Positions 13,290 through 63,182 of a stretch of 64,000 bases of DNA are shown here, one piece after another. The DNA is from Cyanophora paradoxa CCMP329 (Eukaryota > Plantae > Glaucophyta): positions 124,001-188,000 of the forward strand of contig QPMI01000588.1 of NCBI GenBank assembly GCA_004431415.1, read 5' to 3'. How positions within the stretch are numbered: position 1 is the first letter of the stretch; the number at the start of each line of letters is the position of its first letter. The position numbers and the translations under genes are program-made. The notes beneath the pieces are model-generated. The model ran no database searches. It was not told where the DNA came from and saw only the letters and a program-made list of their open reading frames with translations.

Positions 13290-14072
13290 ATGAACGACTT
13301 AGAGGAGTTTAATGCAGGTGAAATGATTAACCCACCATTTCGTGCACTTTTCATAGGCAAGTCTGCAGCAGGCAAGTCAGAATGTGTGAAATATTGGTTA
13401 AAGCAGCTGCATGATGCGAAAAAGATTGATACTGTTCTTGTTGTGAGTGGGACGTCCTTCAATCATTTCTGGGATGCAGTTGCAACATTGCAACTCGGGA
13501 AATGGGATGCTGCTTACATTTCCAAATTACTGGATGAAAGGCAGGAGAAAATCGAAAAAGGGGAACCTGTCAATCACCTGTGTGTGGTCTTAGATGATCT
13601 AATAGACAACGAAATCATTGATTTGACCCGAGACAAAATCGTGGGATCTCTTTATTCCAGAGGTCGCCATTCGAAAATCTCGATTATCTGCATCACACAG
13701 AAGCTGAGGAAGGTTTCTTCAACAATTCGAGTAAATTCGGATTATGCTGTGTTCCTGAGTGCTGCAAATCGCAAAGAACTCGAAGCAATTGAAGAGGAAT
13801 ACAATATCATGCGAAACAAAGACGATTTCTATAAGATGTTTGAGGAGTATGTGCACTCTTACCAATATATTGTGTGGTCTTCTGCGAATTACTCGGTGAA
13901 CTATTATGTTGATAAAGCGGATCTGGTCAAAGATTTCCCATTTCCTCGGTTCCACAGGAAGCCCAAAAAGAAAGAGGACGAACTACCACCTCCACAGAAA
14001 GAGGAAGCCCCCAAAGAGGTCAAGAGTGGTGTTCATTCGAATAAACTGATGCGATATAAGAGAGGTTTGTAA
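13290..14072 (+). CDS. A32-like FtsK-family genome packaging ATPase
   Basis: Walker A GKSAAGKS, Walker B CVVLDD, signature RGRH..ISII.ITQ..IR.N. Confidence 0.93.
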   Translation: MNDLEEFNAGEMINPPFRALFIGKSAAGKSECVKYWLKQLHDAKKIDTVLVVSGTSFNHFWDAVATLQLGKWDAAYISKLLDERQEKIEKGEPVNHLCVVLDDLIDNEIIDLTRDKIVGSLYSRGRHSKISIICITQKLRKVSSTIRVNSDYAVFLSAANRKELEAIEEEYNIMRNKDDFYKMFEEYVHSYQYIVWSSANYSVNYYVDKADLVKDFPFPRFHRKPKKKEDELPPPQKEEAPKEVKSGVHSNKLMRYKRGL

Positions 14073-14100
14073 AATAATCTCTGCTTCTTATAAATATACA

Positions 14101-14835
14101 ATGCCTTCCAAACGCAAAGTTGGTGTTCCTGCTGGTGCTATGTCATATTCTGCATCCTCTGGAACCGGTTCTATGAACACAGAGCCCCTGAAATTCAATG
14201 GTGTCAATGAAGTGAAAGCATCACAGCAACAGGAAGATCCCCTCAATGCTGCTTACGAAGAATCACCAGATGATAAAGCGCCCCAAGCATCCACAAGTGA
14301 CCAGTTGAATATTTCGCCCGAAACCTCTAAGATGAAGGCAGTTGGTGAAGGTGCTCGTCGAATTATTGGTGCTGCTGATGACAAAGGACTGGGTCTGCAA
14401 GATCTCTCACTTGCTCGCAAAGGTGAAGGTGTCTCCAAGGAATCAGACAAGGTAATTCAATCCATGGCTGGTGAGGTGACCTACAAGACAGCACCAACTC
14501 AAAACATCCACCGAATTCCCAAAGCCCAATGGGACGAAATGACTGCGAAACTTAAAGATCTGGAAGCGAAATCGAGTGCACTTGAACAGTATGTCTCTGA
14601 GAAGAAAGAGAGAGCGAAATTAAAGGAGATGCTGCGAAAGGAGGTGTATAGAATGGGAATCACTGGTCTCCCAGATAAGCAGTTCATTGGTAAGAAAGAG
14701 ACTCAAATTGATGAGCAGGCAGTTGATGAGATGAAGAACAAAACCCAGAAGGGCACCATTGAACCTGGTGCTACCAAATCAGAGGTCGATAAAGGTGTTG
14801 CCCCAACAGTATATAAACGACGAGTTTGGCTATAA
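14101..14835 (+). CDS. Hypothetical viral protein (charged, coiled-coil)
   Basis: 244-aa ORF in tandem gene array with viral codon usage and an AT-rich leader. Confidence 0.7.
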   Translation: MPSKRKVGVPAGAMSYSASSGTGSMNTEPLKFNGVNEVKASQQQEDPLNAAYEESPDDKAPQASTSDQLNISPETSKMKAVGEGARRIIGAADDKGLGLQDLSLARKGEGVSKESDKVIQSMAGEVTYKTAPTQNIHRIPKAQWDEMTAKLKDLEAKSSALEQYVSEKKERAKLKEMLRKEVYRMGITGLPDKQFIGKKETQIDEQAVDEMKNKTQKGTIEPGATKSEVDKGVAPTVYKRRVWL

Positions 14836-14862
14836 TTATCTCGCTTTAAGAGAGAGAGCATC

Positions 14863-15096
14863 ATGGATTTCTTGCGAAAAATCATTGAAATGTTTAATCT
14901 CCACATTGTGAGCAATTGTCACAGTGGTTGCTGTGATACAAAAGTCGAAATCGAATTCTCTGACACTGAAAGTCATGGATCTGGCGGTAGGCGATTATCC
15001 ACAGACTCGGTTGATTTCGAGGAGCATATTAAAACAGAGACTGTGAGGCGACGCTCTGTATCTTTCACAGATCCAAAATTAAATCTCGGCAATTAA
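14863..15096 (+). CDS. Small hypothetical viral protein (CHSGCC motif)
   Basis: 77-aa ORF closely following the previous gene. Confidence 0.5.
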   Translation: MDFLRKIIEMFNLHIVSNCHSGCCDTKVEIEFSDTESHGSGGRRLSTDSVDFEEHIKTETVRRRSVSFTDPKLNLGN

Positions 15097-15297
15097 TATC
15101 GAATGCTCAGTCTCTCTGAGATCTATGCTATCCTGGGCAGGAAATCCGCTGAATATGCAACAGAAGCCGCAATAAAAAAGCGTAGACAGGAACTGGTCTC
15201 GATCTGCAAAAAATGACAAGGGATTTAAGGGTAAGGTGTGTTTGATTGGTGAACCCGGACAAATTATTTTCTCGTCCCAATATAAGGAACATATCAA

Positions 15298-15525
15298 ATG
15301 GAAACTGAATCTGTGGTCGAATTCGAACTTGCAATGAGCGAAATGGATCCCAATGAAAAGAAAAGGTTGTATGACCGCTTGTATTTCCAGAAACGCTATC
15401 AAGATGAGGAGTTTCGAGAATTATATCGTAAAAAGGCACTGGAACGATATTATCGCAGGAAAGCTGCTGAGATGGATCCCAATAATCCAGTGAAACGCCC
15501 AGTAGGTCGTCCCAGAAAATACTGA
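15298..15525 (+). CDS. Small basic DNA-binding protein with C-terminal AT-hook
   Basis: KRPVGRPRKY AT-hook preceded by a Y/R/K-rich helix. Confidence 0.65.
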   Translation: METESVVEFELAMSEMDPNEKKRLYDRLYFQKRYQDEEFRELYRKKALERYYRRKAAEMDPNNPVKRPVGRPRKY

Positions 15526-15719
15526 ACCGCCCCCAAAGTCCCAAATATCCGCTGAATCCTTTTTGTTACCATGATCAATCGACTTTTCGATGGATCATTA
15601 CCATGTATCGAGCGCCAATCGGAGAACCCAAAGGTATTTAAAGGTTAGGCGCCAAAAAATGACAAGGATCCGGAGAAATTAATTTCTCCATTAAGTATAA
15701 GAAGCCCCCGATTTTCGAA

Positions 15720-18083
15720 ATGAACGCTGCCGCCAAGAAATCCCTGAAACGCCTTGTTGATTGGCTTCGTGAAGACGATGTCCTGTCTGAGAATATCGTA
15801 ATTCCTGTTGATCCTGATACCAAAAGACCGCTTTTCGCTCATAAAGACGGAACCTGGGATTGGGATAAATTCGATGAAGCCCTGAAATCCGGTAAGTATA
15901 CTGCTTGGGGCATTCTCGCTCGTAATATCCTGGTAATTGACTTCGACCAAGAGGAGGATTTCGCCAAATTCGAGGAGCAATTCCCTGATGATTTCGGTGG
16001 TGTTAATCCTCTTGCTAAAACCAAAAAAGGATATCATGCATTCTTTGCCCGACCTGTTGAGTTTGATTGTTGCAAGATTTGGGATAAAGCCGGTGCATTC
16101 AAAGGAAACCCTAAGATCGACTGCAAAACGATTGCATCCACTGGGACTGCTGGGGTAATTAATGTTTGCCCCAGTCCCAACAAAACATGGATCAGAGAGC
16201 CATGGGCATCTGAGTGTGAGTTGAATGAACCCAGTGCTGAGTTGCAAAAGTGGATTGTTGAAAACTACGAATTCCCCAAATATGCACATTCTTATTTTGA
16301 GAGGTGTGCTGAGGAGACTTTGCAGAAACATATTCTCTCTAAACTCGAAGAATTCGGTTTCATCTTGCCCACAATCATCAATGAGACCAAGATGGGATAC
16401 AATTTCACTGCTGAGAACAAAGGTCTGGTCTGTCCCTGCTGCAAGGGAAGCCATGACTCGAACAATTGGTATATTGTTCAAGGGAAGGAGAAGGACAAAT
16501 ATATTGTTTCGAGTTACAGTGCAAACTGCAAGAAGCGAAGCATCACTGTTCGTGTGAAGGAAGAGACAGATGTGAATATCGAAAATCTAATTGATCGGGC
16601 TGCTGGATCTGATGGAGCCCATCATGATGTTGCACAGGTTGCCTATCTTGTTCTGCAAGACAGATACAAGTATTCCAACAAGACCTGGTTCAAGTTCAAT
16701 GAGACATGTGGAGTCTGGGATATGGATAACACAGGTAAACGAATCTTTCTATGTCTGAGTGCAAGAGTTTGTCCTGTATTTCTGAAACGTGCAATTGAAT
16801 TCTCACAGAAAGCACTTCGTGATGAGGAAAATCGTAATTCGTTCGAAGATAAGGCAAAGATCTTGCTTGGAATTGCTAAGAGTCTCAAACAGTCTTCCTA
16901 CATCAAATCGCTTCTTAGTTTCCTCGAACCCTTGTTTGATGACAGGACCTTTTTCGAGAGACTTGATACTGTTCCCAACATCATTGGATTTACAAATGGT
17001 GTATTTGACTTGAACTCCATGACTTTTCGAAAGGGACTCCCAGATGATATGGTGAGCAAGACCGTTGGCTACGATTATACCACAGAAATCGACCAAGAGA
17101 AGGTTGCAAAGATTAAATCCATCTATGCAGACATTATTGAATCGGATACAGACCGCGAATTCATGCTGGGATTAATCGCCTATGCCCTGAGTGGTTTGAC
17201 AGAAAATCAGAGATACACTTGCTGGACTGGAATTGGAGCAAATGGGAAATCACTGCTCCAAGAGTTGGTGAAAGACACATTTGGTGAGTATTATGGGTCA
17301 CTGGACATGACATATTGGACTAAACCCAAGAAGAGTTCGTCAGAGGCTTCCCCAGAACTCGCCTGCATTCTTGGTAAACGAATTGTTTTCAGTAATGAAG
17401 CAGAAGATGGTGATATGCTTCAACTGAACAAAATCAAACAGGTTACTGGTGGGAATGAGATGAAGGTTCGAGCTCTTTTCAAAGATCTTGTTACATTCAT
17501 TCCCATGTTCCAGTTGTTCTTGTCCACAAATGACAACCTGGGAATCAGTAAACCAGATGCAGGCATTCAGAGGCGAATTATCTACTATCGATTCGAAAAT
17601 GTCTTTAAAGTGGATCCTCAGCCTGGTGAGAAGAAGGCAGACATCACTCTAATGCGTCTCATGAAGAATGATGACGATTATAAAATGGCGCATATGTCCA
17701 TTCTCCTGGAAATGTGGAGAACCCATTCTCTCAATGAATTCGTCACCAAACCTCCCCAGTCCATTGTTGATCAAGGAATGGAGTATTTCAATGAGAATGA
17801 CAAGATTGGAGAGTGGATTCGAGAGAATTATGAACTCACCAAGAGTCAGGGCGATTTCACTACAAGTGAGTCCATCATGAGTGACTTCAAGAGAGACCAC
17901 ATGGGCAAATCTGATGAGAAAATCACAGAATGCACTATCTTGAAGAGACTTCGCGAAGTCTTTAATGTGAAGGCTGAGAGAAAGCGAGTGAATGGTATTC
18001 TTTGCCGTGGTTACTTTGGGATCAAAAAGAAGCATAGTCGCAAGTTGGTGGATGACAGTGATGTTGAAGGTGGGGATGAGTAA
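15720..18083 (+). CDS. PrimPol (bifunctional primase-polymerase)-Zn-D5/SF3 helicase
   Basis: N-terminal GIL...LVIDFD...TKKGYHAFF...CPS (Prim-Pol), CPCC..H..C Zn motif, D5_N IGFTNGVFDL, Walker A GIGANGKS, KRIVFSNE, IKQVTGG, DAGIQRR. Confidence 0.92.
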   Translation: MNAAAKKSLKRLVDWLREDDVLSENIVIPVDPDTKRPLFAHKDGTWDWDKFDEALKSGKYTAWGILARNILVIDFDQEEDFAKFEEQFPDDFGGVNPLAKTKKGYHAFFARPVEFDCCKIWDKAGAFKGNPKIDCKTIASTGTAGVINVCPSPNKTWIREPWASECELNEPSAELQKWIVENYEFPKYAHSYFERCAEETLQKHILSKLEEFGFILPTIINETKMGYNFTAENKGLVCPCCKGSHDSNNWYIVQGKEKDKYIVSSYSANCKKRSITVRVKEETDVNIENLIDRAAGSDGAHHDVAQVAYLVLQDRYKYSNKTWFKFNETCGVWDMDNTGKRIFLCLSARVCPVFLKRAIEFSQKALRDEENRNSFEDKAKILLGIAKSLKQSSYIKSLLSFLEPLFDDRTFFERLDTVPNIIGFTNGVFDLNSMTFRKGLPDDMVSKTVGYDYTTEIDQEKVAKIKSIYADIIESDTDREFMLGLIAYALSGLTENQRYTCWTGIGANGKSLLQELVKDTFGEYYGSLDMTYWTKPKKSSSEASPELACILGKRIVFSNEAEDGDMLQLNKIKQVTGGNEMKVRALFKDLVTFIPMFQLFLSTNDNLGISKPDAGIQRRIIYYRFENVFKVDPQPGEKKADITLMRLMKNDDDYKMAHMSILLEMWRTHSLNEFVTKPPQSIVDQGMEYFNENDKIGEWIRENYELTKSQGDFTTSESIMSDFKRDHMGKSDEKITECTILKRLREVFNVKAERKRVNGILCRGYFGIKKKHSRKLVDDSDVEGGDE

Positions 18084-18151
18084 ACAAAACTGAATCGATT
18101 CTAATACTGATTGAATTTCTTATTTTTTAAAACCCTTACTGTAAATGGTTT

Positions 18152-18286
18152 GTGTGACAGCTGTGACACCTTTTTAATTGGGTGTGACGCCTGTGACGGC
18201 TGTGACGCCTACTTTCAAACTTTTTAAAATTTCAAAAATCTACAAACCTCTGAAAACAGGTGTCACAGGCGTCACAGGCGTCACAC
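18152..18286. promoter_or_regulatory. Internal copy of the iteron cassette directly downstream of the primase-helicase
   Basis: GTGACGCCTGTGACGGCTGTGACGCCT-ACTTTCAAAC...-GTCACAGGCGTCACAGGCGTCAC, same orientation as the right-TIR copies. Confidence 0.65.
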
Positions 18287-18437
18287 CCAATTAACCACAG
18301 ACTCCCCCCTGTGGGTCGATGACTGTTTCGATTCTTAATCGGACAATATAAAAACGTATCGGAAATCGGTGTGTTTTGACAAAAATTGACTGGCGATTTA
18401 AAGGATCATTGCGTTTTCCCTTTGACTTTGACAGAAC

Positions 18438-18629
18438 ATGGATTATTTCGATGAAATTCGGCAGCAGCTGGTTGAAAATAATGATATTGCAGAGGTGGCG
18501 GAATATATTGCAAAGATCAGATCAATCAATGGTAGAACCTATCACAAGAAGCGTGTTTATGCAAGCAGACTCGACACAGTAAATGTATATGTCCCCAAAG
18601 GCACGAATGTGCGAATCATTAGAACCTGA
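18438..18629 (+). CDS. Small hypothetical viral protein
   Basis: 63-aa ATG ORF between the cassette and the next gene. Confidence 0.45.
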   Translation: MDYFDEIRQQLVENNDIAEVAEYIAKIRSINGRTYHKKRVYASRLDTVNVYVPKGTNVRIIRT

Positions 18630-18686
18630 AAAAATGCGAAATGCGTTTAAAACGCCCAAAAATAATATGTTCCCTTAAAGTAAAAG

Positions 18687-21600
18687 ATGCCCCGCCAATC
18701 CAATAGAATCATCAAAGAAAAGAAAAACGAAATACTTGGTCTCTTAGGAACCCTTTTAGTTACTGGTGATATTACAGAATTCGAATGTGATCGCCAGGCA
18801 GCAATCTTGGATAGGAGACCAAGATTATCTCAACTCACAGAAATTACAAATCGCCTCTATGATCGCTTTGAGAGAATGGAGGAGTTTAGGGATGAGGGTT
18901 TAAGGCTGGGAACAATTGAACCCGAGATTGAAGATGGGGAAGCAATGAACAAAGCATATTCTTGGTTGACCTATCGAGCCAGAGGGGAGGTTATCCAAGA
19001 TGGGATTGAATTCTTGGAGAGAATTGCACCCACTCTACCTCAGAGACTCAGACAGAAACTCCAAGACCTGAGAGCAATTAAAACTCGTCTCACATTCATC
19101 TGCAAGTTCACCAAAGTAAGCGATCCAAGGGTGTGGATCACCAAGTTCATTTACAGTGATTACCTTGTCATCACAAGATCTCGAAACATTGATGTTGAAC
19201 TGCGAAATGCACTTCAAGCAATGCAGGAACAGATGATGCAGGTGGACAGTTACAGACTGGATCGCATTGAGATGCTGAGAGTGGTAATAATGTCTTATGC
19301 TCCTGTGGGTGGTTGCTTCTTCTCAACACCTGAGTGGATTGGATCAAAGAGAGCAACTGTGAATGTGAAGAATATTGATGGGCAAGATTGCTTCAAGTAT
19401 GCAATCTTGGCTTACCTGCACCGAAATGATATTAATAAACACAAGAGCAATGAACCCAGCCAGTATAGAAGATGGTTAAACGAACTCAATTTCGAAGGCA
19501 TCCAGTTTCCAGTTGCCTGTGATGCAGAGGTTATTGATCGATTTGAGGAGCAGAACCCTGAACTGAGTATCAACATTTATGGTGCAGATAATCAAGCACA
19601 GTGTTTCTATCCTCTCCATCAATCCAGCAACCCCAGGAGAAAGACCAAGATTAACCTTTTATTAATCGAAAACGAAGAGGATGATAGAGGGCATTATATC
19701 ACCATCATGTCTCTGAGTAGACTTCTGAAAACCACCTTTGATAAAGCCCATGATGGTCGCATCTATTACTGTGAGACCTGTCTGTCTCGTTTCAGAACTC
19801 AGGAGAAGCTGGATGTTCATATAGAAGCGAATCGCTGCATTGATTGGAGGGAGAGCAAAGGTAAATGCCCAAAATCTGGAAGTCACATTGCATTTGGGCT
19901 TCAACATCTTCGCAAAACTGTGTGGCTTCCCACTATCTGCTATGTAAAAATGGATAGTCATTCGGTTCCAATTGATGAGAACCGCAGTAAGAGAGAGGTA
20001 AAATCGGTTTTTCTAACAGTTGTGATGGGAGATGAGGTGATCTATACATGGAGCGAAATAGATGAGAAACCGAAATTTGCATCAGCAGGTGATGATTTCG
20101 ACACCTTACATGGTGTTACTCTCTACCAAAGTAACACCATACCAGAGAGATTACGATTAGATGAATATTATGTGAATCGTAAAGGGATTGATGCAGGCAC
20201 CACAATGGAAGGTGAATTATACATCAGACCCCCTACAAGAATGCAGATAATTGCAGCAGGTGGGAATTTCGGTTTGATGGACACCAAACCAGGTATCTAT
20301 CTTACCAGCTACTATGCAGATGACATCCCAATGACAGGAGGATTGCTCTCTCTACCATCTGATCCAGCAAACTATGATGATAAAGATGCAGCAATCCAAA
20401 TTAATGTTACTGATGTTAGTGACTTAGATAGTTCAAGACCCAAATTAATATTCAGCAGAGAGAGATTGTTACCCAATGCTCTCATTGGAAACCGAGATGA
20501 CTACAAGAGATGCGAAATGTCATGGATAAAAACGAATTATAATGGTGGAGTTGGTGAGGGAGTTTTAGAAATCAATCAGAGGGCAGCAGCAAAGAATATT
20601 CACAATGAGACCATATCAAGAGTGGTAACAGAGGATTACCTTCAAGCCCAAAACTACATAGATGAAACAGAACTGAATACAATTATTGCAGGTATTAATA
20701 TTGGTGTGACAGGGGATTACCTTCCTCTCACAGGAGGGATTATTGATGGAACAGTGACAGCATGCAACTTCTTTGTCCATACTGAAAGCAATCAAACCTT
20801 CCCTGTTGTCCATCCAGGAAGTGAATATGAGATACCTGATGATCCAGCTATTATGCCCATAAAGATTGATCTCCCTTCTGATTATGTAGGAAGGGGTGAA
20901 CTCAAAATCATATCTTTCACAGGAGACTATAATGATCTCATTAATAAACCCACACCATCCAATTTACACCCTGTTGCATATTCGGGTAGTTTCCTTGATC
21001 TTAATAATCGAGCACACACCCACACAAAGGCAGAGATCACAGATTTCGCACACACTCACACTAAGTCCCAAATAACAGATTTTGCACACACCCACACCAG
21101 GGCAGACATTACGAATTTCGCTCACACTCATTTTAAATCGGAAATCACAGATTTCGCACACACCCACACAAAGTCACAGATTACAGATTTTGCACACACT
21201 CATGTAAAGAGTGAGATTACAGATTTTGCTCACAATCACACAAAGGCAGAGATTACAGATTTTGCACACACTCACACCAAGAGTGAGATAACAGACTTTG
21301 CTCATACTCATACTAAATCTCAAATAACAGATTTTGCTCACACACACCTTTGGGGAGATATTACAGATCGACCTACTCTGGATCCATTCACAGCAACCAC
21401 TATCAGAGCAAACAGCACAATGTATGTAGGATCAGGTCAGATTGTAGAGCCAGCAGGACCTATGTTTGAGGAAACATGGTTTTTCCACAATTCGCAGAAC
21501 TATTATGATCAAACTCTACTTGTCAGAGGAAATGCATATGCAAGGAATTTCTATGCTATGAACCCCACAGATAGCACCACTATTAGTAGATGTATTACAG

Positions 21601-21929
21601 AAGCAGATCTTACCAGTCAACTTAATGCATATTTCAATGGAAAAATTCAAGCAGGAAAGTATGTTTACACTACTCCTGCTATGAATTACAATAACTTATA
21701 TGTGTTCAATCTAACCATCTATTTTACCAGTGCATTTGCTTCTCCTCCTGTTGTAACAGCAACAGTAAGGCATGAAGGACAGGCAAATGCTACAACACCA
21801 GTCATATTTACTGTGAACCTGTTAAATGTTTACAGTAGTTATTTCACTTGTGAACTGTTTACTGATCCATATGCAATGGAAAACACATCCAAAACTGTAA
21901 CAATTCACTACATTGCTGTTGCAATTTAA
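18687..21929 (+). CDS. Chimeric protein: pPolB N-terminus (terminal protein + vOTU-like Cys protease + Zn finger) fused to a phage-type tail fibre with HxH repeats and an H-type-lectin/gp53-like tip
   Basis: PEWIGSKRATVNVKN..DCFKYAILAYLH..FPV..FEEQNP..SINIYG..GHYITI..LSRLL..CETC..H..C matches the Polinton pPolB N-terminal region. No PolB catalytic motifs follow. C-terminal half has GDYNDLINKP, (AHTHTKxxITDF)x10 and IQAG..F..AF..PPVV..IHYIAV. Confidence 0.8.
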   Translation: MPRQSNRIIKEKKNEILGLLGTLLVTGDITEFECDRQAAILDRRPRLSQLTEITNRLYDRFERMEEFRDEGLRLGTIEPEIEDGEAMNKAYSWLTYRARGEVIQDGIEFLERIAPTLPQRLRQKLQDLRAIKTRLTFICKFTKVSDPRVWITKFIYSDYLVITRSRNIDVELRNALQAMQEQMMQVDSYRLDRIEMLRVVIMSYAPVGGCFFSTPEWIGSKRATVNVKNIDGQDCFKYAILAYLHRNDINKHKSNEPSQYRRWLNELNFEGIQFPVACDAEVIDRFEEQNPELSINIYGADNQAQCFYPLHQSSNPRRKTKINLLLIENEEDDRGHYITIMSLSRLLKTTFDKAHDGRIYYCETCLSRFRTQEKLDVHIEANRCIDWRESKGKCPKSGSHIAFGLQHLRKTVWLPTICYVKMDSHSVPIDENRSKREVKSVFLTVVMGDEVIYTWSEIDEKPKFASAGDDFDTLHGVTLYQSNTIPERLRLDEYYVNRKGIDAGTTMEGELYIRPPTRMQIIAAGGNFGLMDTKPGIYLTSYYADDIPMTGGLLSLPSDPANYDDKDAAIQINVTDVSDLDSSRPKLIFSRERLLPNALIGNRDDYKRCEMSWIKTNYNGGVGEGVLEINQRAAAKNIHNETISRVVTEDYLQAQNYIDETELNTIIAGINIGVTGDYLPLTGGIIDGTVTACNFFVHTESNQTFPVVHPGSEYEIPDDPAIMPIKIDLPSDYVGRGELKIISFTGDYNDLINKPTPSNLHPVAYSGSFLDLNNRAHTHTKAEITDFAHTHTKSQITDFAHTHTRADITNFAHTHFKSEITDFAHTHTKSQITDFAHTHVKSEITDFAHNHTKAEITDFAHTHTKSEITDFAHTHTKSQITDFAHTHLWGDITDRPTLDPFTATTIRANSTMYVGSGQIVEPAGPMFEETWFFHNSQNYYDQTLLVRGNAYARNFYAMNPTDSTTISRCITEADLTSQLNAYFNGKIQAGKYVYTTPAMNYNNLYVFNLTIYFTSAFASPPVVTATVRHEGQANATTPVIFTVNLLNVYSSYFTCELFTDPYAMENTSKTVTIHYIAVAI
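21012..21371 (+). repeat. Ten 36-bp coding repeats (AHTHTKS/AEITDF)
   Basis: Synonymously diverged 12-aa repeat with an HxH motif, as in trimeric phage tail fibres. Confidence 0.9.
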
Positions 21930-21948
21930 CTATTTCGTAATTATAAAG

Positions 21949-22995
21949 ATGACCTCTCTATTAGAAATCCCAAACTATGAACTTGCAGCCAAATCACTCC
22001 ATAGCACCTCTCATGGAGTAGTTGATTCAACCCCTGGGTATATTTGCACTGAAACTTCAAGTAATACCTCTTTTACAGAGAATAATATACTCAGAGTGAA
22101 AGAAATTCGATGTGATCGGAATGGAGGCAAGATAAGAACCACAGGTATTATTATCTCGAATAAAAATCAGGTTCAAGCAGGTCAAGTAGTCCCCGATTCA
22201 GCAGTTTATGATAATGTAGGTGGATTCACCACAGCACAGATAGTTACTTTTGGTAACACAAGCAATAGTTCCGCTCTTGTGGTCAAGAGTGGAGGAGCAT
22301 ACTTTGGAGAGGCATTAAAGGTGAATGGAACAGTAACAGCATCCATACTAAATGCTGGAAGTGGAATATTTGAGAGTCCAATAAATTTTGAGGGTGGGTA
22401 TAATGCGAGTAGTTTTTCAGTTGGTGTTGGTGTCTTTTCCACAATGGTAAACACACCTGAAATTGAAACAACAGATGCTTTAAATATAAAGAGAAATGCA
22501 GTGGTTACAGCAACCATAAACAATGTCTCCCCTTCAATAAATCTTATTAAATATCTGAAAGCTCCTCACCCTCGGTTTTGTATTGTTAATTATTCAACAT
22601 CAGCAGTTACTGTGGGAACTACATCAACAGCAAGGAGATTCACTTTTAATAGAACTCTTGTAGATGCAAGCAATAATATCACATTGTCCACAGGCACTTT
22701 TACAGCACCTGTCTCAGGAATTTATAGATTCTTCTTTACTGTTCAAATGTCAACAGCATCATCCACAGGTGAGTGTAGAGTTGCATTTAGAAAGAATGAT
22801 TTGGCTCTTTCCCCTCAAACGGTTCAAGAATTTTCAACTTACAATGGAAGGCGGAGTGTTCATATGGAGGCTTCTTTTGCTGTATATGCGAACGAATTTG
22901 TGAATGTTATACAAACCTGGACATCATCCATGCAATATGATGCTACAATACAAGGTATTACCTGTTTTGGGGGGCATCTCATCAGTAGATTATAA
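21949..22995 (+). CDS. Fibre/spike paralog 1 with C-terminal C1q-like domain
   Basis: Shared N-domain (RVKEIRCDRN.G..RTT, ALVVKSGGA) and C1q motif GTFTAPVSGIYRF...FGGHLI. Confidence 0.75.
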   Translation: MTSLLEIPNYELAAKSLHSTSHGVVDSTPGYICTETSSNTSFTENNILRVKEIRCDRNGGKIRTTGIIISNKNQVQAGQVVPDSAVYDNVGGFTTAQIVTFGNTSNSSALVVKSGGAYFGEALKVNGTVTASILNAGSGIFESPINFEGGYNASSFSVGVGVFSTMVNTPEIETTDALNIKRNAVVTATINNVSPSINLIKYLKAPHPRFCIVNYSTSAVTVGTTSTARRFTFNRTLVDASNNITLSTGTFTAPVSGIYRFFFTVQMSTASSTGECRVAFRKNDLALSPQTVQEFSTYNGRRSVHMEASFAVYANEFVNVIQTWTSSMQYDATIQGITCFGGHLISRL

Positions 22996-23017
22996 ACTTT
23001 TTGTTGGGACTTTATAG

Positions 23018-24040
23018 ATGGCTACCCAAATCGCAGTTCCTGTTTTCTGTTATGCAGCACCTAAATTGCATCAACTGAACCACACAGTTACAGATGCTAT
23101 TCCCGGGTTTATTTGCACAGAAACCACAGGAGCAGATTCGTTTACTCAAAATTCGATTATCAGATGCAAGGAAATTCGATGTGATAGAAATGCTGGAAAA
23201 ATAAGAACCACACAATTAATCGTAAGTAACAAGAATCAGGTTTTAACAGGTGGTGTAGTTGCTGATGCAGCTATTTATGATGATGCAGGTGGGGTGACCA
23301 CACCACAAATTGTTACTTTTGATGGGACAGAAAATAATGCAGCACTTGTAGTTAAATCAGGTGGAGCATGGATAGGTTCGGGAGCTTTTGTGAATGGAAC
23401 ACTCTCAGCTACAAATGTTTCAATTTCAGGAACAACAACATTTACAGGTGTTGTGAATGCAAATGGTGGGCTTTTTGTTCCTACTTATACAGTCCCTGTG
23501 ATGACCACAACCACAAAGATACAAACACCTGAAATAGATACAGGAGCAAATGTAGATCTGATTCTGAAACGAAATAGCACATAAGTCGCACGAATTGATG
23601 CAGGGGGTCTTACAATCGCAGCAAACTTTTATTTGAAGCAAGAAACCCAACCTCGATTTTGTGTTGGGTTTGGTGTAGCAACAAGAAGTGGAGTATATGG
23701 GCGCCTTACGAATTGGTTGCATGAATTCTTTGATAATACCAACTCATTCAATGTAGTAGAAGGGAAATTTACAGCGCCTATTAGTGGAGATTATAGATTC
23801 TCTCTTACTTCTTATAGTATTGTTACATCCTCTGTGAGTGTAGATCTGAAAGTAAATGATCAGAATGTTTCAACAGAATTCAATTTCAGGGTAAACAACT
23901 CTCAAACAGTAACCAACAAAACAATCAATTTGAGCGCAATACTTAGACTTGGAGCCGGGGATAATGTCTCTATTTATGCTATTGATACTTCCATTTCAGA
24001 GTTCACAACATTTAGTGGCGAATTGCTGAGCATAATTTAA
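23018..24040 (+). pseudogene. Fibre/spike paralog 2 with C1q-like domain, interrupted by in-frame TAA at 23582-23584
   Basis: ORFs 23018-23584 and 23633-24040 are in one frame and colinear with paralog 1 (KRNST*VARID vs KRNAVVTATIN). GKFTAPISGDYRF...FSGELL. Confidence 0.8.
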
Positions 24041-24059
24041 TTTCTACAAGTAGTTTAGA

Positions 24060-24323
24060 ATGTCGAATATATATCAAGTGGTTCTTACAGATACAGAAAA
24101 TCTCGGAATGGAGTATTGCGCTTTATCTGTTCAAGATTGGATTGATAATGCTGTTCACAACAGGGCAAGAATCGCAATCGATGATATTGTTCAAAAAGAA
24201 ATTCAATCTTGCATCTCAGGTGGTATCCAAATACCAACCTCAAAGGAAGCGATTGTATTACAGGCATTCCAAAGGGGAACTGTAAAGAAAGGCATTGAGT
24301 ATAACAATGTCACAGAAGAGTAG
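24060..24323 (+). CDS. Small protein resembling phage proteins encoded beside C1q-type tail fibres
   Basis: LTDTE...QDWIDNAVHNRARIAIDDIV...IP..KEAIV..AF.RG, recognised from memory of marine/cyanophage fibre-adjacent genes. Confidence 0.55.
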   Translation: MSNIYQVVLTDTENLGMEYCALSVQDWIDNAVHNRARIAIDDIVQKEIQSCISGGIQIPTSKEAIVLQAFQRGTVKKGIEYNNVTEE

Positions 24324-24361
24324 TGAACATTATTTTTCTTTCCTTCTTAGTAAAAGAAGCA

Positions 24362-25216
24362 ATGGGTGAATATAATCGAGTTCAACTTCCAATATATTCC
24401 CTTGGATCCCCTGCTATGCACTTTCGCCAGCATGAAGTTAATGATGAGGTTCGTGGTTTAGAATCCACAGAGAGACCCAATTCCAATGGTAACTCCTTTG
24501 ATAAAAATTCGATTATTCGAGTTAAAGAACTGAGAGCAGACAAGAATTCTGGTGTGGTTAAAACAACTCGACTCCTTGTCTCAAATGCGAATTTCTTCCA
24601 ACCTACCAATGGAGGTCCTGATGCTTACAGTGTAGACCTGAAAGCCCTCGATTTTGACAAGAATTCTGCTGCTGTAACTGTGAGATCAGGTGGAGCATTT
24701 ATTGGTGGTGGTTGCAGAGTTTCAGGTCAACTCTCCTCATCAATTGCATACAATGATGTCCCAGATACTCTTGAACAGAATGCTGAGAACCCACAACGAA
24801 TTCGGTTCTATACACCAGTTGCACAGCAACCTTTTCTGCATTTCTATGTTGCATCATCTGTCACTCTTGAAAATTCAGAATTGGTTTCCATTACAGGAAC
24901 TGATCGAGTGAGAAGGAATATTCCTCTTCCCACAGCAATGCTCTCAATGTGCAGAGCAAATAATAACCAACAAGGTCACAATTACCTATTCTTTGTTCAA
25001 GCATCCAACCATTTTGGTCGGGGATATTGTGTTTATAACAATCTGACATTTACTTATGATTTGTTTGTCACTGAGGTTGGAGTTTACAATACTATGATTA
25101 TGGGACTGAGAACAGATATAGCAGCTGTTTCAGCACTTCGTGGGGTAAACATTGCAGATATCTTCACAACAGGGTTTTACCAGGAACCAGATGTGATTGA
25201 TAACCCAACCCCATAA
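24362..25216 (+). CDS. Fibre/spike paralog 3
   Basis: Shared N-domain RVKELRADKNSGVVKTTRLLVSN...RSGGAFIG, with a non-C1q C-terminus. Confidence 0.7.
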   Translation: MGEYNRVQLPIYSLGSPAMHFRQHEVNDEVRGLESTERPNSNGNSFDKNSIIRVKELRADKNSGVVKTTRLLVSNANFFQPTNGGPDAYSVDLKALDFDKNSAAVTVRSGGAFIGGGCRVSGQLSSSIAYNDVPDTLEQNAENPQRIRFYTPVAQQPFLHFYVASSVTLENSELVSITGTDRVRRNIPLPTAMLSMCRANNNQQGHNYLFFVQASNHFGRGYCVYNNLTFTYDLFVTEVGVYNTMIMGLRTDIAAVSALRGVNIADIFTTGFYQEPDVIDNPTP

Positions 25217-25239
25217 ATTATATATCACTTTAATGTAAA

Positions 25240-26073
25240 ATGGCTGCCCCAGCACCAGTAGAGCGAATTATTACACCCCAGCTATCATTAGCAGCACCTG
25301 CAAATCACGTTTTGCAGCATGCTACCTTTGATGATGTAGAAGGTCTCCAATCAACAGAAGTCCAACCTACAATGAATACCTTTGGTTCCACCCACAAACT
25401 GAGATTGCAGGAACTCAGGTGTGATAAAAATAATGGTATAGTTAAGACAACGAAACTCCTTGTCACAAATGCAAACTTTTCTGCCCATTATGGAGACCCA
25501 GACAGCTATGGTGATCCTCTTTCTACTTATTCTTTTGAATCTCGGTCGGGAGCTATTAACTGCAAATCGGGGGGAGCATATATTGGTGATGGTCTTCGGA
25601 TTGGTGGAGCTGTTGGTGCGCCTCTTTTCGTAAATGATCAACCCAATCCCATTGATCCCAACACCAGAATTCGCACCTATGTCCCCAGTATGAATGCGCC
25701 ATACATTATAAAGATCTTCCCAATTGTTGTGAATGAGCAGACATCAGTAGTTGATTCTCTTGTTGAGATTGGTGACCACTACAAGGTGGTTGTTGATATT
25801 CCACCAGATGTTTATGCTGTCTGTCAAGTGGAGGGTGGAACTCCAAATATTGCAGTTGTGATCACTCCATATGATAATTTTGGAATTGCTTATCATGGTG
25901 TGAATTTCGGTCTTGAAGATTACCAGTTCTTGGTGAGAGCCACCAGATTTGGTATCTACAAATGCATTCTCTATGCTGAGAGAACCGATGCTATTGCAAG
26001 ACAGAATACATATGCAGAATATTACGGCACAAATCGCTACTTCCCCATTTTCGGACAGGATACTGCTCCATAG
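25240..26073 (+). CDS. Fibre/spike paralog 4
   Basis: RLQELRCDKNNGIVKTTKLLVTNANF...KSGGAYIG. C-terminus related to paralog 3 (FG..Y...G.Y.....RTD). Confidence 0.7.
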   Translation: MAAPAPVERIITPQLSLAAPANHVLQHATFDDVEGLQSTEVQPTMNTFGSTHKLRLQELRCDKNNGIVKTTKLLVTNANFSAHYGDPDSYGDPLSTYSFESRSGAINCKSGGAYIGDGLRIGGAVGAPLFVNDQPNPIDPNTRIRTYVPSMNAPYIIKIFPIVVNEQTSVVDSLVEIGDHYKVVVDIPPDVYAVCQVEGGTPNIAVVITPYDNFGIAYHGVNFGLEDYQFLVRATRFGIYKCILYAERTDAIARQNTYAEYYGTNRYFPIFGQDTAP

Positions 26074-26100
26074 AAATCTCAGGTATATATAGAGAGAGGG

Positions 26101-26373
26101 ATGGATGATAAAACAAAGAAATTCATAGAATCTGCAATGATGGTTCATGGTGATGCTAAATTCGATTATAGTGAGACAGTCTATAAGAAAGCACAAGAGA
26201 AGGTATCTGTTAGATGCCTTAAATGCAACAAGATCCTGCAAACCTACCCATTTAATCATGTAAGGGGCAGTGGTTGCAGAGAGTGCAACAAGAAATCCTC
26301 TCATGCTTACAGAAAAAAGACAACATCAGGAATTGTGATAGATGATAAACCAGTAGTATTATATTTCGATTAG
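26101..26373 (+). CDS. Stand-alone Zn-ribbon (DUF723/CapR-like) domain without a nuclease domain
   Basis: FIESA..VHG..FDYS..VY.....V.VRC..C.......NH..GSGC..C, typical of NCLDV/phage homing-endonuclease N-terminal repeats. Confidence 0.7.
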   Translation: MDDKTKKFIESAMMVHGDAKFDYSETVYKKAQEKVSVRCLKCNKILQTYPFNHVRGSGCRECNKKSSHAYRKKTTSGIVIDDKPVVLYFD

Positions 26374-26519
26374 ATCTTTGAGAGAGAAATGAGAATCTTT
26401 CCCCATTTTCCCTTGGTGATTATGCATGTATCAAAGCAGTTGGGACAGGTCTTGTGGTAGTGCAACAGAATGATATCCACCAACTCATAAGGTAGCACTC
26501 TTGCTAAGATGGTTCGCAT
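26370..26519 (-). CDS. 49-aa ORF not in the ORF track, with F-box-like LPYELVDIIL and CxxC
   Basis: Own translation: MRTILARVLPYELVDIILLHYHKTCPNCFDTCIITKGKWGKILISLSKI*. It fills the gap between its neighbours. Confidence 0.45.
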   Translation of the reverse strand: MRTILARVLPYELVDIILLHYHKTCPNCFDTCIITKGKWGKILISLSKI

Positions 26520-26559
26520 TCTACCAATCGCGTTTTTAATTTTTCTAAATTATTCATAA

Positions 26560-26961
26560 ATGAATACTCATCGAGGCTTCCATGTGATGCTGGATTACAA
26601 ATTCAGAACCCAATTAGCAGTAGGAGTGGAAAACTTGGAGACAACAACCAGGTGGTTAATGCAGTTCTTGCAAACTATTATTCAAGAGCAAGGTATTCGA
26701 GTAGTTCACAAGCATTGCGAGATTTTCGATGGTGGTATTTCTCCTCCTGGTTTTGCAATGGTTCTTCTGCTGGATGAGAGCCATTGCACTGCTCATTGTT
26801 ACTCAAATGAAGGTATGCTGGCGATCGATATATTCAGTTGTGGATTAGAAGCAGAGAGAAAAACCACGAGAGTATCTCATGAGATAGATGAGAGAATAAC
26901 AGGTGTGTTTTCAGGGTTGGAGAAATCGGAGAAACATAGAGTATTGCGATTTCCGAGTTAG
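26560..26961 (+). CDS. speD: S-adenosylmethionine decarboxylase proenzyme, prokaryotic class I type
   Basis: GFAMVLLLDESHCTAHCY..EG.LAIDIFSCG contains the E|SH self-cleavage site and the D.F.CG motif. Confidence 0.85.
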   Translation: MNTHRGFHVMLDYKFRTQLAVGVENLETTTRWLMQFLQTIIQEQGIRVVHKHCEIFDGGISPPGFAMVLLLDESHCTAHCYSNEGMLAIDIFSCGLEAERKTTRVSHEIDERITGVFSGLEKSEKHRVLRFPS

Positions 26962-27549
26962 TTGACACTGAGAAATTCAGAATTTCAGATGGTCTTACTG
27001 AAAATGGTCAGATAATCGGGTGTGACACCTATTTAATTGACTGTGACGCCTCTTTAATTGACTGTGACGCCTGTGACGCCTGTGACGCCTACTTTCAAAC
27101 TTTTTAAAATTTTCAAAAATGACAGACTTCTGAAAACAGCCGTCACAGCCGTCACAGCCGTCACACCCAATTAAAAATGGAATCTCTTTCTCTTACTGAG
27201 ATATTCAAACATATATTCTTGTCTTACTGAAATCCGTCTTGTGACACCTCTGACACCTACAAAACACTATTCATTAATCCACCTTTTCGAAAATGCGAAG
27301 TTGTCTTACTGGAAATGGTCTGCATTTTCGCTGTGACACCTAATTTAATTGAGTGTGACGCCTGTGACGCCTGTGACGCCTACTTTCAAACTTTTTAAAA
27401 TTTTCAAAAATGACAGACTTCTGAAAACAGGCGTCACAGCCGTCACAGGCGTCACAGACATTCTGCCCCCCTTACTACTCTTCTCAAAAATAGAAATATA
27501 TCTTACTGAATATCATTTGAATACTATCTGTCACACTTGATTTCATTTA

Positions 27550-28824
27550 TACTAAGTTATAACTTATTACTTAAGACGCAAGCGGACACTTGCGAAAAAA
27601 ATCGGGTTAACACGGCCGGCTGAGCTTGCAGTTTCGATTCAGTTCCCCGTTTTGTCGCACCCAATATGAACCCTCATGTGCGAACACGTCGAGTGTCGAC
27701 ATCGATATCGGCGTATACCATATACGTAGAGTCGTAGACCCGACTCACCCCGACAGCTGCCGCAGCCAGTGCCAGCCACTAGCTGCTGCATGCCAGCTGC
27801 AGCCTGCAGGCTGCCAGCTGCAGGCGAACGCGATCATCGGATAGGCCTAGGTGGCATACTAAGTTCGAATCGGCCGCGGACCACAGACCACGGCGAGTCG
27901 ACGTCGCGACTCGCGACTCGCGAATTCGAATCTCCCCAAAACGCTAGATTTACTAAGTTAATGTCGACGTCGACGTCGACTCGTCCCGCGGGCCGCGGCG
28001 TACGTGGATATCGATCGACGAACGTAGTTACCCAAAATGACGTCGTTCCCCAAAACGCTAGATTTTCAAGCTTGACATCGTTTGCAAACGGAAACTACGT
28101 GGTGGCCATGGCTTATCCGCGGATAACGGAACTTTTTTGAAAGTAACGGAAAATGGCGGATACTAGTAACGGAAAGTAACGGAAACACACCGTGACTGCA
28201 GTCTGCATGCAGCTAGCGCTGGACTAGTACCGTAGTAGTACGTATACTGCTGCTGATGTAGGCTTTATAAGCAGTCTTAGCTATAGGCTCTATAATAATT
28301 AACGCAGCTACAGCCCGCACTACGTATACGACATGCGCAGCCTGGCCATGGCAGGCTGCAGCAGCGCAGCTGCAGCTGTCATGAACGTTGCGCTCAGCAA
28401 CCGTGTACGCACTGCTCCTGCTGCATAGATAGCGTCTGTACATACGTTCGTGGCTAGCGCTAGCATAGGCGCTTGTCTTGAAGGAGCACATCAGCAGGCG
28501 AAGCCAACGCAGCGCTCGGCTAGCGGAAGCAGCGAATATTTCGAAGCTTAAGGCTCGAGGCGCCCGCCTATTAATTTTTAATGATGAATTCGAAGTAGCG
28601 AGGCTATTTAAATTTGAAGACAAAGAAAGACCGCAGTGCCCTGAATTCGAAGTCTAGATCTGGCATTTTTTCTGAGATACTGCGATGGGGCGATCGAAAC
28701 CCCCGTACACGTACGGGTATGTATCGCGTTTCAAATTCATATGCATGCATATTTCACGCACAGACAGAGCCTGCAGCTGGAATTATTAAATGGGGGGGTG
28801 CGGGGGGGCTTGCCCCCCTGCTTG
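27550..28824 (+). mobile_element. Non-autonomous Helitron-like (HUH/rolling-circle type) insertion
   Basis: Absent from the left TIR. Sits at an A|T junction with no TSD (1-bp ambiguity), starts TACTAAG and ends in the GC hairpin GCGGGGGGG-CTTG-CCCCCCTGC followed by TTG. Insertion is certain; the class is inferred. Confidence 0.6.
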
Positions 28825-56112: not shown

Positions 56113-56565
56113 GCTGTTTCTGGCCGCCGATGGACCGGGCCACGAACTTTGCCGGACGAACTGGGGCACTAACAAATTCCCCCGTGAGCTGTTCGCGTAC
56201 CCCCACTCGGCCGAATTGCGTGTTTTAAGGCCGTCGGCGGCCGGTGGAAGGAGCGCACGCCGAAGGGCAGCAGGAGCACGCGCTCCGCCCTGCGCGTGCG
56301 GCCCGCCGGGCCACTGGATCGGCCGCTCGGTCGGCGGTTGGTTGCAAGAGTAGTCGTTAGCGGAGCTGCTCGGCGGCGCTCGGTTTGCGGTCGCATCGTC
56401 TGAATCGAGCGGCTACCGGCCTGCCTCCGAGCACCCGTGCGCTCTAGCCGGCGCGTGCAGCTCCTTCTCGAGAAACCGTGCGCTCATCCCCGGGGCGCAG
56501 CGTCGATGCCTGCGGCGGATCGCTTCCGAGTAGGCACCGGCAGCGTCGGCGCAGCGGCGGAGAAG

Positions 56566-58663
56566 ATGGAGGACGACGCCGCGGCAGCGGAGCCGCTCGC
56601 CGCGCGCTCGGAGTCAAGCCGGCACGCGCACACCACCGGGCGCTCGGAGAAGCTGCAGAACCTCTCGGTGGCCTCGGAGCCCTCAGAGTCTCCGTCTGGG
56701 GAGCCGCGGGGCGCCAAGGAGCCGCCGGAGGGCGGCCTCCTCGCGTGGCTCGTCGTCTTCGCCTCGTTCATCGTGCACGTCTGCGTCCTCGGCATGCAGG
56801 CGCGCCCCAGAGAGATCTGCTCGCACCTGCGCCGCCTCACCGCCCCCGCCGCAGTACTCGGCCGGCGTCTTCATCGTGCCCTACACGAGGGCGTTCAACG
56901 TCGGCCGCGGCGCCGTCTCCGTCGTCAGTGCGCCCGCCCGCCCCGCCCCGCCGCGCTGCCGTCGCTTCGAATTCCCGTACCCACCGCGGGGCAGGCACGA
57001 TCGCGACCGTCCTGTTCCCCCTCGCGGGGGCCCTCGTGGGCGCCGTCGCGGACCGCTGGGGGTACCGCAAGGTCGTCGCCGTGGGCGGGGTACTCTTCTG
57101 CGCCGGCTTCGCCATCAGCGCCTCCGCCCAGGAGGTCTGGCACCTCTACCTCACCCAGGGCGCGCCCCCGTACCCCCCGCCAGCCCACGCGTACCCCCCT
57201 CCCCCGCCTGAGCCGTACCCCGCAGGCCTCATCGTGGGGCTCGGCGCCTCGGCGCTCTACTTCCCCTCCGTCTCCGTCGTATCCCAGTGGTTCAAGAAGA
57301 GGTGCGGTACCCCCGTCTTCCCCTCTCGCCCGCCGCCCACGCGGGCGCCGCAGGCGGCGGGGCCTGGCGGTGGGCCTGGCGGTCTCGGGCTCGGGGGTCG
57401 GCAACTTCGCCTTCGCGCCCCTCATCGAGGCCCTCATCGCCTCCCAGGGCTGGCGGGTGCCCCCCCCCCCGCCCCCCGAGGCTCCTCCCCCGGGCCCCCC
57501 TCACGCCGCGCCGCGCGCCACGCCGCAGAACGCGCTGCTGGTGATCACGGCGCTGAACGCCGGCCTCCTCTCCGTCGCCGTCGGCTTCCTCCGCCGCCGC
57601 CTCGTCCCGCCCCCGCCCCCGCCGGGCCCCGACGGCGCCCCCGCGCGGCGGCCGCCCCTCTTCGACCTCTCGCTCCTCCGCATGCGCAACTTCCGCCTCC
57701 TCTACCTCGCCACCGCCACCGGCCAGCTCGGCAATCTCATGTCCGCCCCCCGCCCCCCGCTCAGATCCGATCCGATCCGATCCGAGCCGGGGCGACGCGG
57801 CGCAGGCCGTTCGCGCACGTGTCGCCGTTCGCGCAGGACTACGGCATGAGCGCCTCGTACGGGGCCATCCTCGTCTCCATCCTCGGCGCCGGCTCCGCCG
57901 CCGGCCGCGTCCTCCTCGGCCTCGTCGCCGACCGCTGGGGCCCCGTCCCCGTCCTCCGCCTCGCCATGCTCGTCAACGCCCTCGCCATGCTCGCCTGGCC
58001 CTGGTGCACCGCGCCCCCGGCCCTCGCCGCCTTCTGCGCCCTCTACGGCTTCACCGTGCGCCCCCTGCCCCGCGCCGGCTTCGCCCTGCACCCCCTGAGC
58101 CTCCCCTGCGCAGGGCGGGGGCTTCATCAGCCTGCTGCCGGTGGTGTCGGCGGAGCTCTTCGGGGTGGAGCGCCTGGCGCGGGCGGTGGGCCTGCTCTTC
58201 ACCTCCTTCGGCGTCGCCAACGCCGTCGGCTCGCCCCTCGCCGGCTTCCTCTTTGACGCCACCGGCTCCTACACCCCCGCCATCCTGGCATTCTCCGGTG
58301 CCATCCCCCTCTTACGGGGGGGCGGAGAGGCTCCGGTCCGCTGACCAGAGCGCGCCCGCAGCGTGCATGTTCGTCTCTGTCGGCTTCCTCCTCTTTGTCC
58401 GCGTCGAGCGCCCAGCCGGCGCCGCCGTCGCCCCGGCCCCCGCCCCCCCGCCGTCCGCCGGCGAGGGCGCCCCCCTCTCCTCCTTCTCCTCCTCCGGATC
58501 GGCGCTGAAGCCCGAGCCCGAGCCCGGGGCCGGCCTCGTTCCGGCGGGCGGTGACCGGCTCCAGGGAGCCTTGCCGCCCGACGGGGTGATCGCCGCGTCT
58601 TTGGGGGGCGCGCCGCCGCCAGCGCCGCCGCCCGTCAAGGCCCCAGCCACCATCGCCGTCTGA
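56566..58663 (+). CDS. MFS monocarboxylate transporter (SLC16/MCT family), multi-exon
   Basis: PPEGG..AWLVVFASF, GAVADRWGYR, SQWFKKR/RGLAVGLAVSGSGVG, GRVLLGLVADRWG, GSPLAGFLFDATGSY. Alternative ATG at 56506. Confidence 0.92.
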
Positions 58664-61337: not shown

Positions 61338-62052
61338 GCCGGCTGGTCTCTGCGCACTCGAGCCTGATGGCAGTCGTGTACTCAGCGCGGTCGGCTGATG
61401 TTTCTGTGCTTCTCGGCCGCGGCAGTCACACTATAGCTAGCCTAGTAGTCACTAGCTATAGTGCTGCTTCTCCAAGCTCCCGCCGGGCCCGGCCGGCGCC
61501 GCAGCGCTCGCTGCTGGGTACCGGTAGCTGCAGACTGGATTGGATCAGACGTCGACTTTTTTCCCGATCGGCGAGAACCTCCTTCGAGTTTCGAATTCGA
61601 ATTCGAAATTTCCAGTTCGAATTCGATCGATCACGAATTCGAGCCTGATCGCGGCCCGCCCCAATTGCAAACTCCGGCCGGCCGCGCGCGGGCCCGGCCC
61701 CCGGGCCCTTCTTGCGCGGTTCTGAGTCATGATCATGATCATCTTATCTAGCCCGGCGGCCCCGGCCATCACGTGCACGCTCCCCATGGCCAAGGCCAGT
61801 GTCGATCGCGAAAATGGGTACGTATACCAAGGTTCAAAATTAAGTTTGAGCTAAATCGCTTTTTGAATTCACCGACAGGACATGTACAGACACAGCTGCA
61901 AACCTAAGGGCATTTCCTCCTCCCTCGGAGTCCCTCCTACCCGGCCCACCCCTGAAGGCCGACCCATTAGATTCTCGCATCAATTGATTGTTGTGCGCGT
62001 GTAGGTACGAGCCCCGCGGGCGTGCGAGAGCGGCGGGACGCAGGGGTGCGGG

Positions 62053-62117
62053 ACGGACTCAGGGGGCGGCGCAGGTCGGGGGCACGCCTGTTTTCGCCGC
62101 CTCCATCACTGCTCCGC
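62053..62117 (-). promoter_or_regulatory. Type II eukaryotic SECIS element
   Basis: Minus strand GCGGA-GCA-GUGAU-GGAGGCGGCG-AAAA-CAGG..CCUG-CGCCGCCCCC-UGAG-UCCGU gives helix I, RUGAN/NGAN core, helix II (1 mismatch), AA bulge and apical mini-stem. Confidence 0.85.
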
Positions 62118-62189
62118 GGGGCGGGCGTCGTCCGCGCCCCCGCCGCCGCTGCTCATCGAGGGCCTCGCGGGGCTGAGCGGATCCGGCGC

Positions 62190-62640
62190 TCAGGCGCCGA
62201 GCTTGCCGAGCGCCTCCTCGATCTTGGCGATGAGGATGCTCTCGATCTCGCTCGGGTCGAAGCGGCGCGGGTTCCAGCGGCTGGCGGTCGGCAGCGTGAG
62301 GGACGTTCGGGGCTGCTCGGAGCGCGAGCTCGGGAGGAGCTCAGCTCACCTCTGGTTCTCCTTCAGGATCTGGACGTTGACAGCTTTATCGCCCACCTGT
62401 TCCAGAGTGACGGTAATAATGTTCGGCCTGAACACCGCGCGCGTCAAGCAGGGGCCGGCGCCGGGCCTGGGGCCAGGGATCGAAACCAATTGCAAGCACT
62501 CACCCGAAGTCTCCGCTGTCGACGCATTGCGCGCTGGGAAAGCGTTTGTTGATCATGCGTCGGCAGGCGGAGAACTCGCTCCACCCGCCTCAGGCGCGGT
62601 TGTAAGCGATGGTAAATGTCAACGGCAAATCCGCGGCCAT
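62190..62640 (-). CDS. Rdx/SelW-like selenoprotein (101 aa, Sec17); exons 62640-62504, 62427-62350, 62280-62190
   Basis: MAADLPLTFTIAYNRA-U-GGWSEFSACRRMINKRFPSAQCVDSGDFGPNIITVTL..IEEALGKLGA*. In-frame TGA at 62592-62590, two GTGAG..CAG introns, SECIS in the 3' UTR. Confidence 0.85.
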
Positions 62641-63182
62641 CGTTCTGAACTCTCTGCGCGACGCGGAAGAACGGGGTCAGATGAAGGTGCGCATGCCGGT
62701 CCCGAAACAACCCTCACACCCTCACACAGCGCCGCCTCATGCCGTGCGTACACCCTCACAGAGCGCCGCCAGGCCCTTCTATGAACGCTAGCTGACCATC
62801 CAAACGCAGTAGAGTGGTAGGCGCACCTGGAACTTGAGTGGAAGACTCGAAACGCCGAGGCGAGGTTGCGAGATTGGGGGTACGCGGCTGGTCAGCGTTG
62901 TACCCCCAGTGAACACTGCGGCGTGACTGCGCCGTGACTGCGGCGCCTCAACGCCCGGGGGATCCGCAGCGAGGGCATCTCGTCCATCACGCGCAGCACG
63001 TTTCGCTAATCTCATTGCATGGGAGGCCGGTGGATGGGCATGGTCGGGCCGCTGTACTTGGGCCAGCCAAGAGCCTGCTTGCGGCAACACGCCTGCTAGC
63101 TATAGCTAAAGGACAGCATCTTTCTGATAGAAAGGGCCCGAGCTGTGACCTGCTTCTTGAAAGCCAGCTTTAGAACTGGGCG

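Follow-up and report, generated by a model that had tools for sequence, protein, structure and literature searches.

In the window analyzed here (the whole 64-kb stretch of Cyanophora paradoxa DNA), the minus-strand locus whose coding region runs from 62640 to 62190 is likely to be a real nuclear gene (tig00021254, g19723) for a selenoprotein of about 101 residues, in which the UGA at codon 17 would be recoded by means of a selenocysteine insertion sequence (SECIS) in the 3' UTR. Judged by itself from the sequence evidence, the selenoprotein reading of this UGA is probable. The elements that make up the predicted gene are as follows, each with the basis for its placement.

62504..62640, minus strand: exon 1, with the ATG at 62640, 16 codons, the UGA (proposed Sec17), residues 18-45, and 2 bases of codon 46 (direct reading; P0001 alignment, 100% identical over residues 29-46)
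62590..62592, minus strand: in-frame TGA, proposed Sec17, within the motif NRA-U-GGW (direct reading)
62554..62556, minus strand: ATG of Met29, where the shortened public gene model P0001 begins (P0001 alignment)
62428..62503, minus strand: intron 1, 76 nt, GT..AG, phase 2 (junction in agreement with P0001)
62350..62427, minus strand: exon 2, 78 nt (sequence and P0001 alignment)
62281..62349, minus strand: intron 2, 69 nt, GT..AG, phase 2 (sequence and P0001 alignment)
62190..62280, minus strand: coding part of exon 3, with the stop TGA at 62192-62190 (sequence and P0001 alignment)
62048..62135, minus strand: SECIS-like element, form 2 (minimum free energy fold and strict descriptor)

The proposed start codon (62640-62638) has A at -3 and G at +4, and is followed by 16 sense codons, the TGA as codon 17 (62592-62590), and a frame that remains open beyond the TGA as far as the donor site at 62503. 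Residues read in exon 1 past the proposed Sec17 include Cys26, Phe34-Pro35, and Cys39. Starting from this upstream AUG, the UGA-interrupted frame spans three exons and ends at 62190, giving a predicted full-length protein of about 101 residues. An earlier sequence-only reading of this DNA had proposed a gene concealed by a TGA at codon 17 and divided by two clean introns; both proposals hold up, as the coordinates and the uninterrupted downstream frame can be read directly on the minus strand, and the two introns (76 and 69 nt) are bounded by GT..AG at junctions identical to those of the annotated P0001. An in-frame TGA lies 13 codons 5' of the main ATG, so that, barring a spliced upstream exon, translation in this frame could begin no earlier than ATG 62640.

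Several additional features were observed upstream of, or at some distance from, the predicted gene. A mini-ORF of five codons (ATG...TGA) occupies 62677-62694 on the minus strand, in the same frame as the main ATG and 13 codons ahead of it. Approximately 300 nt upstream of the gene start, at 62915-62945, is an 11-nt tandem repeat with 2.8 copies of the unit ACTGCGGCGTG. Two long plus-strand ORFs (56437-58256) overlap in different frames, and each resembles the major facilitator superfamily (MFS_1, Sugar_tr); these probably represent one intron-containing transporter gene, approximately 4 kb from the selenoprotein gene.

A search with the exon 2 ORF recovered one database protein, P0001, a 73-aa EukProt entry for Cyanophora paradoxa (tig00021254_g19723.t1). 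Aligned to the window by tblastn, P0001 matches 62556-62503, exon 2, and exon 3 at 100% identity, and both junctions are the same. The entry starts at Met29, the first ATG downstream of the TGA, and is without the first 28 residues because the gene predictor treats UGA as a stop. A second member of the same protein cluster, P0002 (tig00000093_g3484.t1), is identical to P0001 at 72 of 73 residues, the sole difference being one Ala/Ser exchange, and its model also begins at Met29. That both models are cut at Met29 suggests the same in-frame stop on the second contig, which argues against a sequencing error. Both public models, g19723 and g3484, would then miss the first 28 residues of the protein, the probable active site among them. 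The published Cyanophora paradoxa genome has a GC content of 67.6%, a mean intron length of 86 bp, and BRAKER1/AUGUSTUS gene models guided by RNA-seq (PMC6704402); the GC content in this part of the window (0.67-0.70) and the sizes of the two introns fit these species values.

The occurrence of an orphan gene in two near-identical copies could also be expected of a decaying gene, that is, a recently duplicated pseudogene in which TGA has replaced a codon for Cys, Trp, or Arg. However, the splice sites and downstream frame are intact in both copies, which differ by one substitution in 73 residues, and a well-formed SECIS in the right place would not be expected of a pseudogene. We therefore regard decay as very improbable.

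The element downstream of the stop codon provides the principal evidence for the selenoprotein reading. Its GUGA core (62109-62106) begins 80 nt past the stop codon and is followed on the minus strand by AAAA at 62094-62091 and a 3' UGA at 62061-62059. Folded without constraints, the 96-nt minus-strand segment between 62135 and 62040 has a minimum free energy (MFE) structure (-41.6 kcal/mol, z = -2.3) with the architecture of a form-2 SECIS: helix I leads to an internal loop in which AGUGAU faces UGA, and beyond it come a 10-bp helix II interrupted by one A.C mismatch, the unpaired AAAA, and an apical mini-stem. A strict descriptor was also applied. It requires [A/G]UGA and, one base further on, a helix of 9-13 bp in which a single mismatch is tolerated; this helix encloses AA and an apical region of 8-30 nt, and its second strand is followed by one base and GA. 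Across both strands of the whole window (128 kb), its single match is the hairpin itself. Dinucleotide shuffles of the GC-rich half of the window give a chance expectation of 0.07 strict sites per 64 kb searched, which puts the probability that a given stop has one within 500 nt, on the correct strand, at about 5e-4. The quartet, a helix II of approximately 9-13 bp, the unpaired AA, and an apical loop or mini-stem are thus all present by both fold and descriptor, and the type-II SECIS with a GUGA core some 80 nt after the stop that had been proposed from the sequence is confirmed in position and form by the measured distance, the MFE fold, and the sole strict match.

Allowing two mismatches makes the descriptor unspecific: eight sites are then returned, most of them within an island of low GC content at 12001-28000 (GC 0.39-0.43, vs 0.62-0.70 from 32 kb onward), where they accumulate because the island is AT-rich. 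The only other relaxed match in the GC-rich half (61634) falls within a series of near-palindromic repeats of the GAATTCGAA type at 61585-61650, downstream of the gene.

Rfam SECIS covariance models returned no match at E<=10 in slices of 401 nt and 101 nt around the hairpin. GUGA_AA cores have been reported as common among the SECIS elements of several algae, as compared with the AUGA of most animals (PMC3473315); the Rfam result is given little weight, and we suspect that these models may perform poorly on GC-rich algal elements. A similarity of part of the hairpin (62059-62102, minus strand) to the trypanosomatid H/ACA snoRNA TB6Cs1H1 was rejected as most likely due to chance, at 20 bits against a gathering score of 40 and with coverage of helix II and the AAAA bulge only.

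Were the hairpin instead a chance GC-rich structure, the true product could be the annotated 73-aa protein from Met29, and the 16-codon stretch an in-frame upstream ORF that arose by chance. Open frames arise easily in DNA of 67% GC; an estimate from base composition puts the chance of 16 open codons before a stop at about 0.7, which counts against the recoding reading. The failure of the Rfam SECIS models to recognize the hairpin points in the same direction, as does the lack, in searches that cover residues 29-101, of homologs showing conservation 5' of the TGA. The BRAKER/AUGUSTUS models do begin at Met29 in both copies, but the annotated start says little, since gene predictors always stop at TGA. 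Against a Met29 product, the strict SECIS pattern lies right after the stop and on the correct strand, a placement with the low chance probability given above; the start context of Met29 is weaker than that of ATG 62640; and Met29 would fall within the predicted first helix, of which residues 2-5 of the model (H2-5) would be just a remnant. Taking these points together, we consider it quite unlikely that the annotated protein is the true product.

Recoding of codon 17 also implies that the host has selenocysteine machinery, as the sequence-only reading had noted. The literature largely supports this implication: tRNA-Sec, SecS, eEFSec, PSTK, and SPS have been reported in Cyanophora paradoxa (PMC6627142, PMC3531208), together with selenoproteins and SECIS elements (PMC6627142), and the PlantRNA paper describes the selenocysteine pathway as maintained in glaucophytes (PMC3531208). 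The exception is SBP2, which was not found in an older Cyanophora assembly (PMC6627142). The 64-kb window itself contains no tRNA genes.

Searches for relatives of the predicted protein were negative throughout. Pfam, NCBIfam, PDB sequences, and the ESM Atlas returned nothing for the exons or for P0001; an exhaustive phmmer search with P0001 (residues 29-101) against 1.84 billion representative proteins recovered P0001 itself but no relatives, and tblastn-confirmed scans of metagenome and viral contigs with the same query also came back empty. Three weak phmmer matches to P0001 were to long repeat proteins (RSD-2 repeats, YDG/fn3 repeats) and were discarded as spurious. No homolog aligning Sec or Cys to the UGA was recovered by these searches of residues 29-101, the second Cyanophora copy being the only match, and conservation across the UGA therefore cannot be shown. 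Residues 1-28, which lie outside the database searches, are probably the most diagnostic part of the protein; additionally, transcriptome-derived proteomes may omit short ORFs whose start lies beyond an internal stop. By sequence, as judged from residues 29-101, the protein is an orphan and appears to be lineage-restricted.

The sequence-only reading had further assigned the protein an Rdx/SelW-like fold. The Rdx family (PF10262) includes SelW, SelT, SelH, Rdx12, and bacterial SelW-like proteins, and for comparison with it 120 bacterial loci were fetched by a DNA pattern encoding EYCTQCxW, their ORFs extracted, and 22 of the proteins aligned; the two that were checked in Pfam matched Rdx with E values of 1e-28 and 1e-30. 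The candidate and the family share several general features. Both are small proteins, of about 90-100 aa in the family; in both, the redox residue follows a hydrophobic N-terminal stretch and precedes the first helix (as predicted for the candidate), and the candidate Sec would occupy the second redox position of what would be an xxxU motif. The spacing of +17 from Sec17 to Phe34 equals the invariant spacing from C28 to F45 in the 22 Rdx proteins, though this match was noticed after the fact and is weak evidence taken alone. AlphaFold2 modeling of P0001 alone (residues 29-101) yielded, at a pLDDT of 61, a helix remnant (H2-5), three strands, and a long C-terminal helix. The Rdx topology is strand-helix-strand-strand-strand-helix, and the model covers the part from the end of helix 1 onward. 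SelW resembles the candidate in size (about 101 aa) and in this low-confidence predicted order of elements (helix, three strands, long helix), and the candidate's "RRFDP", just ahead of its last helix, corresponds in position to the "GxFPE" of bacterial Rdx proteins.

These similarities would be accounted for if the protein were a true but strongly diverged member of the Rdx family (SelW/SelT/SelH) in which the first Cys of CxxU had been replaced by Asn. However, the defining CxxC/CxxU motif is absent, with N-R-A-U in its place and therefore no Cys at -3, and no HMM or profile similarity was detected. Pfam Rdx gave no match at E<=10 on P0001 (residues 29-101) or on single exons; hhalign of the 22-protein bacterial alignment, which represents one subfamily, against P0001 and the post-Sec part of exon 1 gave a probability of 0.3%; and hmmsearch of the exon pieces with an HMM built from the same one-subfamily set scored about 0 bits, with non-colinear alignments. 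Shape searches (Foldseek PDB, VIA wide, and Atlas) with the partial model (pLDDT 61) returned weak, unrelated rows at background level and no Rdx structure, and carry little information. Nor does the candidate match the family's GxFEV-type motif or its W at +2 from the second Cys, and its inter-strand hairpin looks longer. What survives of the proposed Rdx/SelW-like fold is the place of Sec between a strand-like hydrophobic stretch and a predicted helix, the Sec-to-Phe spacing, and a low-confidence order of strands and helices, while the sequence and profile searches and the missing CxxU motif speak against it. A distant relationship to the Rdx family is possible but less likely than not, and we do not assign the protein to it; on searches that covered residues 29-101, a new family appears to fit better than an Rdx variant.

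If the selenoprotein reading is correct, translation would begin at ATG 62640, and the form-2 GUGA-core SECIS in the 3' UTR, approximately 335 nt downstream of codon 17 in the spliced mRNA, would direct recoding of its UGA to Sec. Termination would take place at the last UGA, which precedes the SECIS core by 80 nt. Beyond this terminal UGA (62192-62190) the frame stays open for 27 sense codons until it meets the UGA within the SECIS core (62108-62106); were the terminal UGA also recoded, the protein would gain a Gly/Ala/Pro-rich tail of 28 residues, counting Sec at that UGA.

Within the predicted protein, Sec17 would sit between a strand-like hydrophobic stretch and the first predicted helix, the usual place for the redox center of a thioredoxin fold. 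Because the partner position at -3 is Asn and not Cys, Sec would act as a lone redox residue. Oxidation might convert it to a selenenic acid or a mixed selenenylsulfide, and its recycling would fall to an external thiol (glutathione, thioredoxin, or a client protein), with Cys26 or Cys39 as a less likely reductant. If helix 1 begins at Gly18, Cys26 would lie approximately 2.5 helical turns from Sec17 and on the opposite face, and Cys39 would be at the start of the next strand; in this predicted arrangement, neither looks like an obvious intramolecular partner of Sec17. A more specific proposal, which we consider unlikely, is that the protein represents a new family with a minimal peroxidase-like center (lone Sec, Asn at -3, Trp at +3, and no resolving Cys in the motif) on a scaffold the size of SelW, about 100 residues, either as a glaucophyte-specific invention or as the sole remnant of an ancient family.

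Pipelines that rely on homology, such as Selenoprofiles, would be blind to orphan families. Because a SECIS-backed UGA gene without relatives or a CxxU partner Cys escapes such pipelines, surveys that depend on them would undercount selenoproteins. Glaucophyte selenoproteomes have been described as very small (PMC7539508). The candidate would additionally offer a compact natural test case for a lone Sec on a small, possibly thioredoxin-like scaffold.

Two known systems invite comparison with the Cyanophora candidate. SymSEP of Symbiodinium is a lineage-restricted algal selenoprotein (PMC7539508). It belongs to a different organism and has a different sequence, and the candidate consists of two near-identical copies in one species, with no family-level conservation yet; nonetheless, both are known in the Sec form only and in one lineage, and both were recognized by a UGA together with a SECIS. 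Glutathione peroxidases, in which Gly comes right after Sec, and peroxiredoxins, whose TxxC motif places Thr three residues before the catalytic Cys, have thioredoxin-like folds. Though the candidate is far smaller than these enzymes, has no sequence similarity to them, and has no demonstrable catalytic tetrad, it resembles them in its lone chalcogen, in the polar residue at -3 (Asn in the candidate), in the Gly that follows Sec, and in the Trp at +3.
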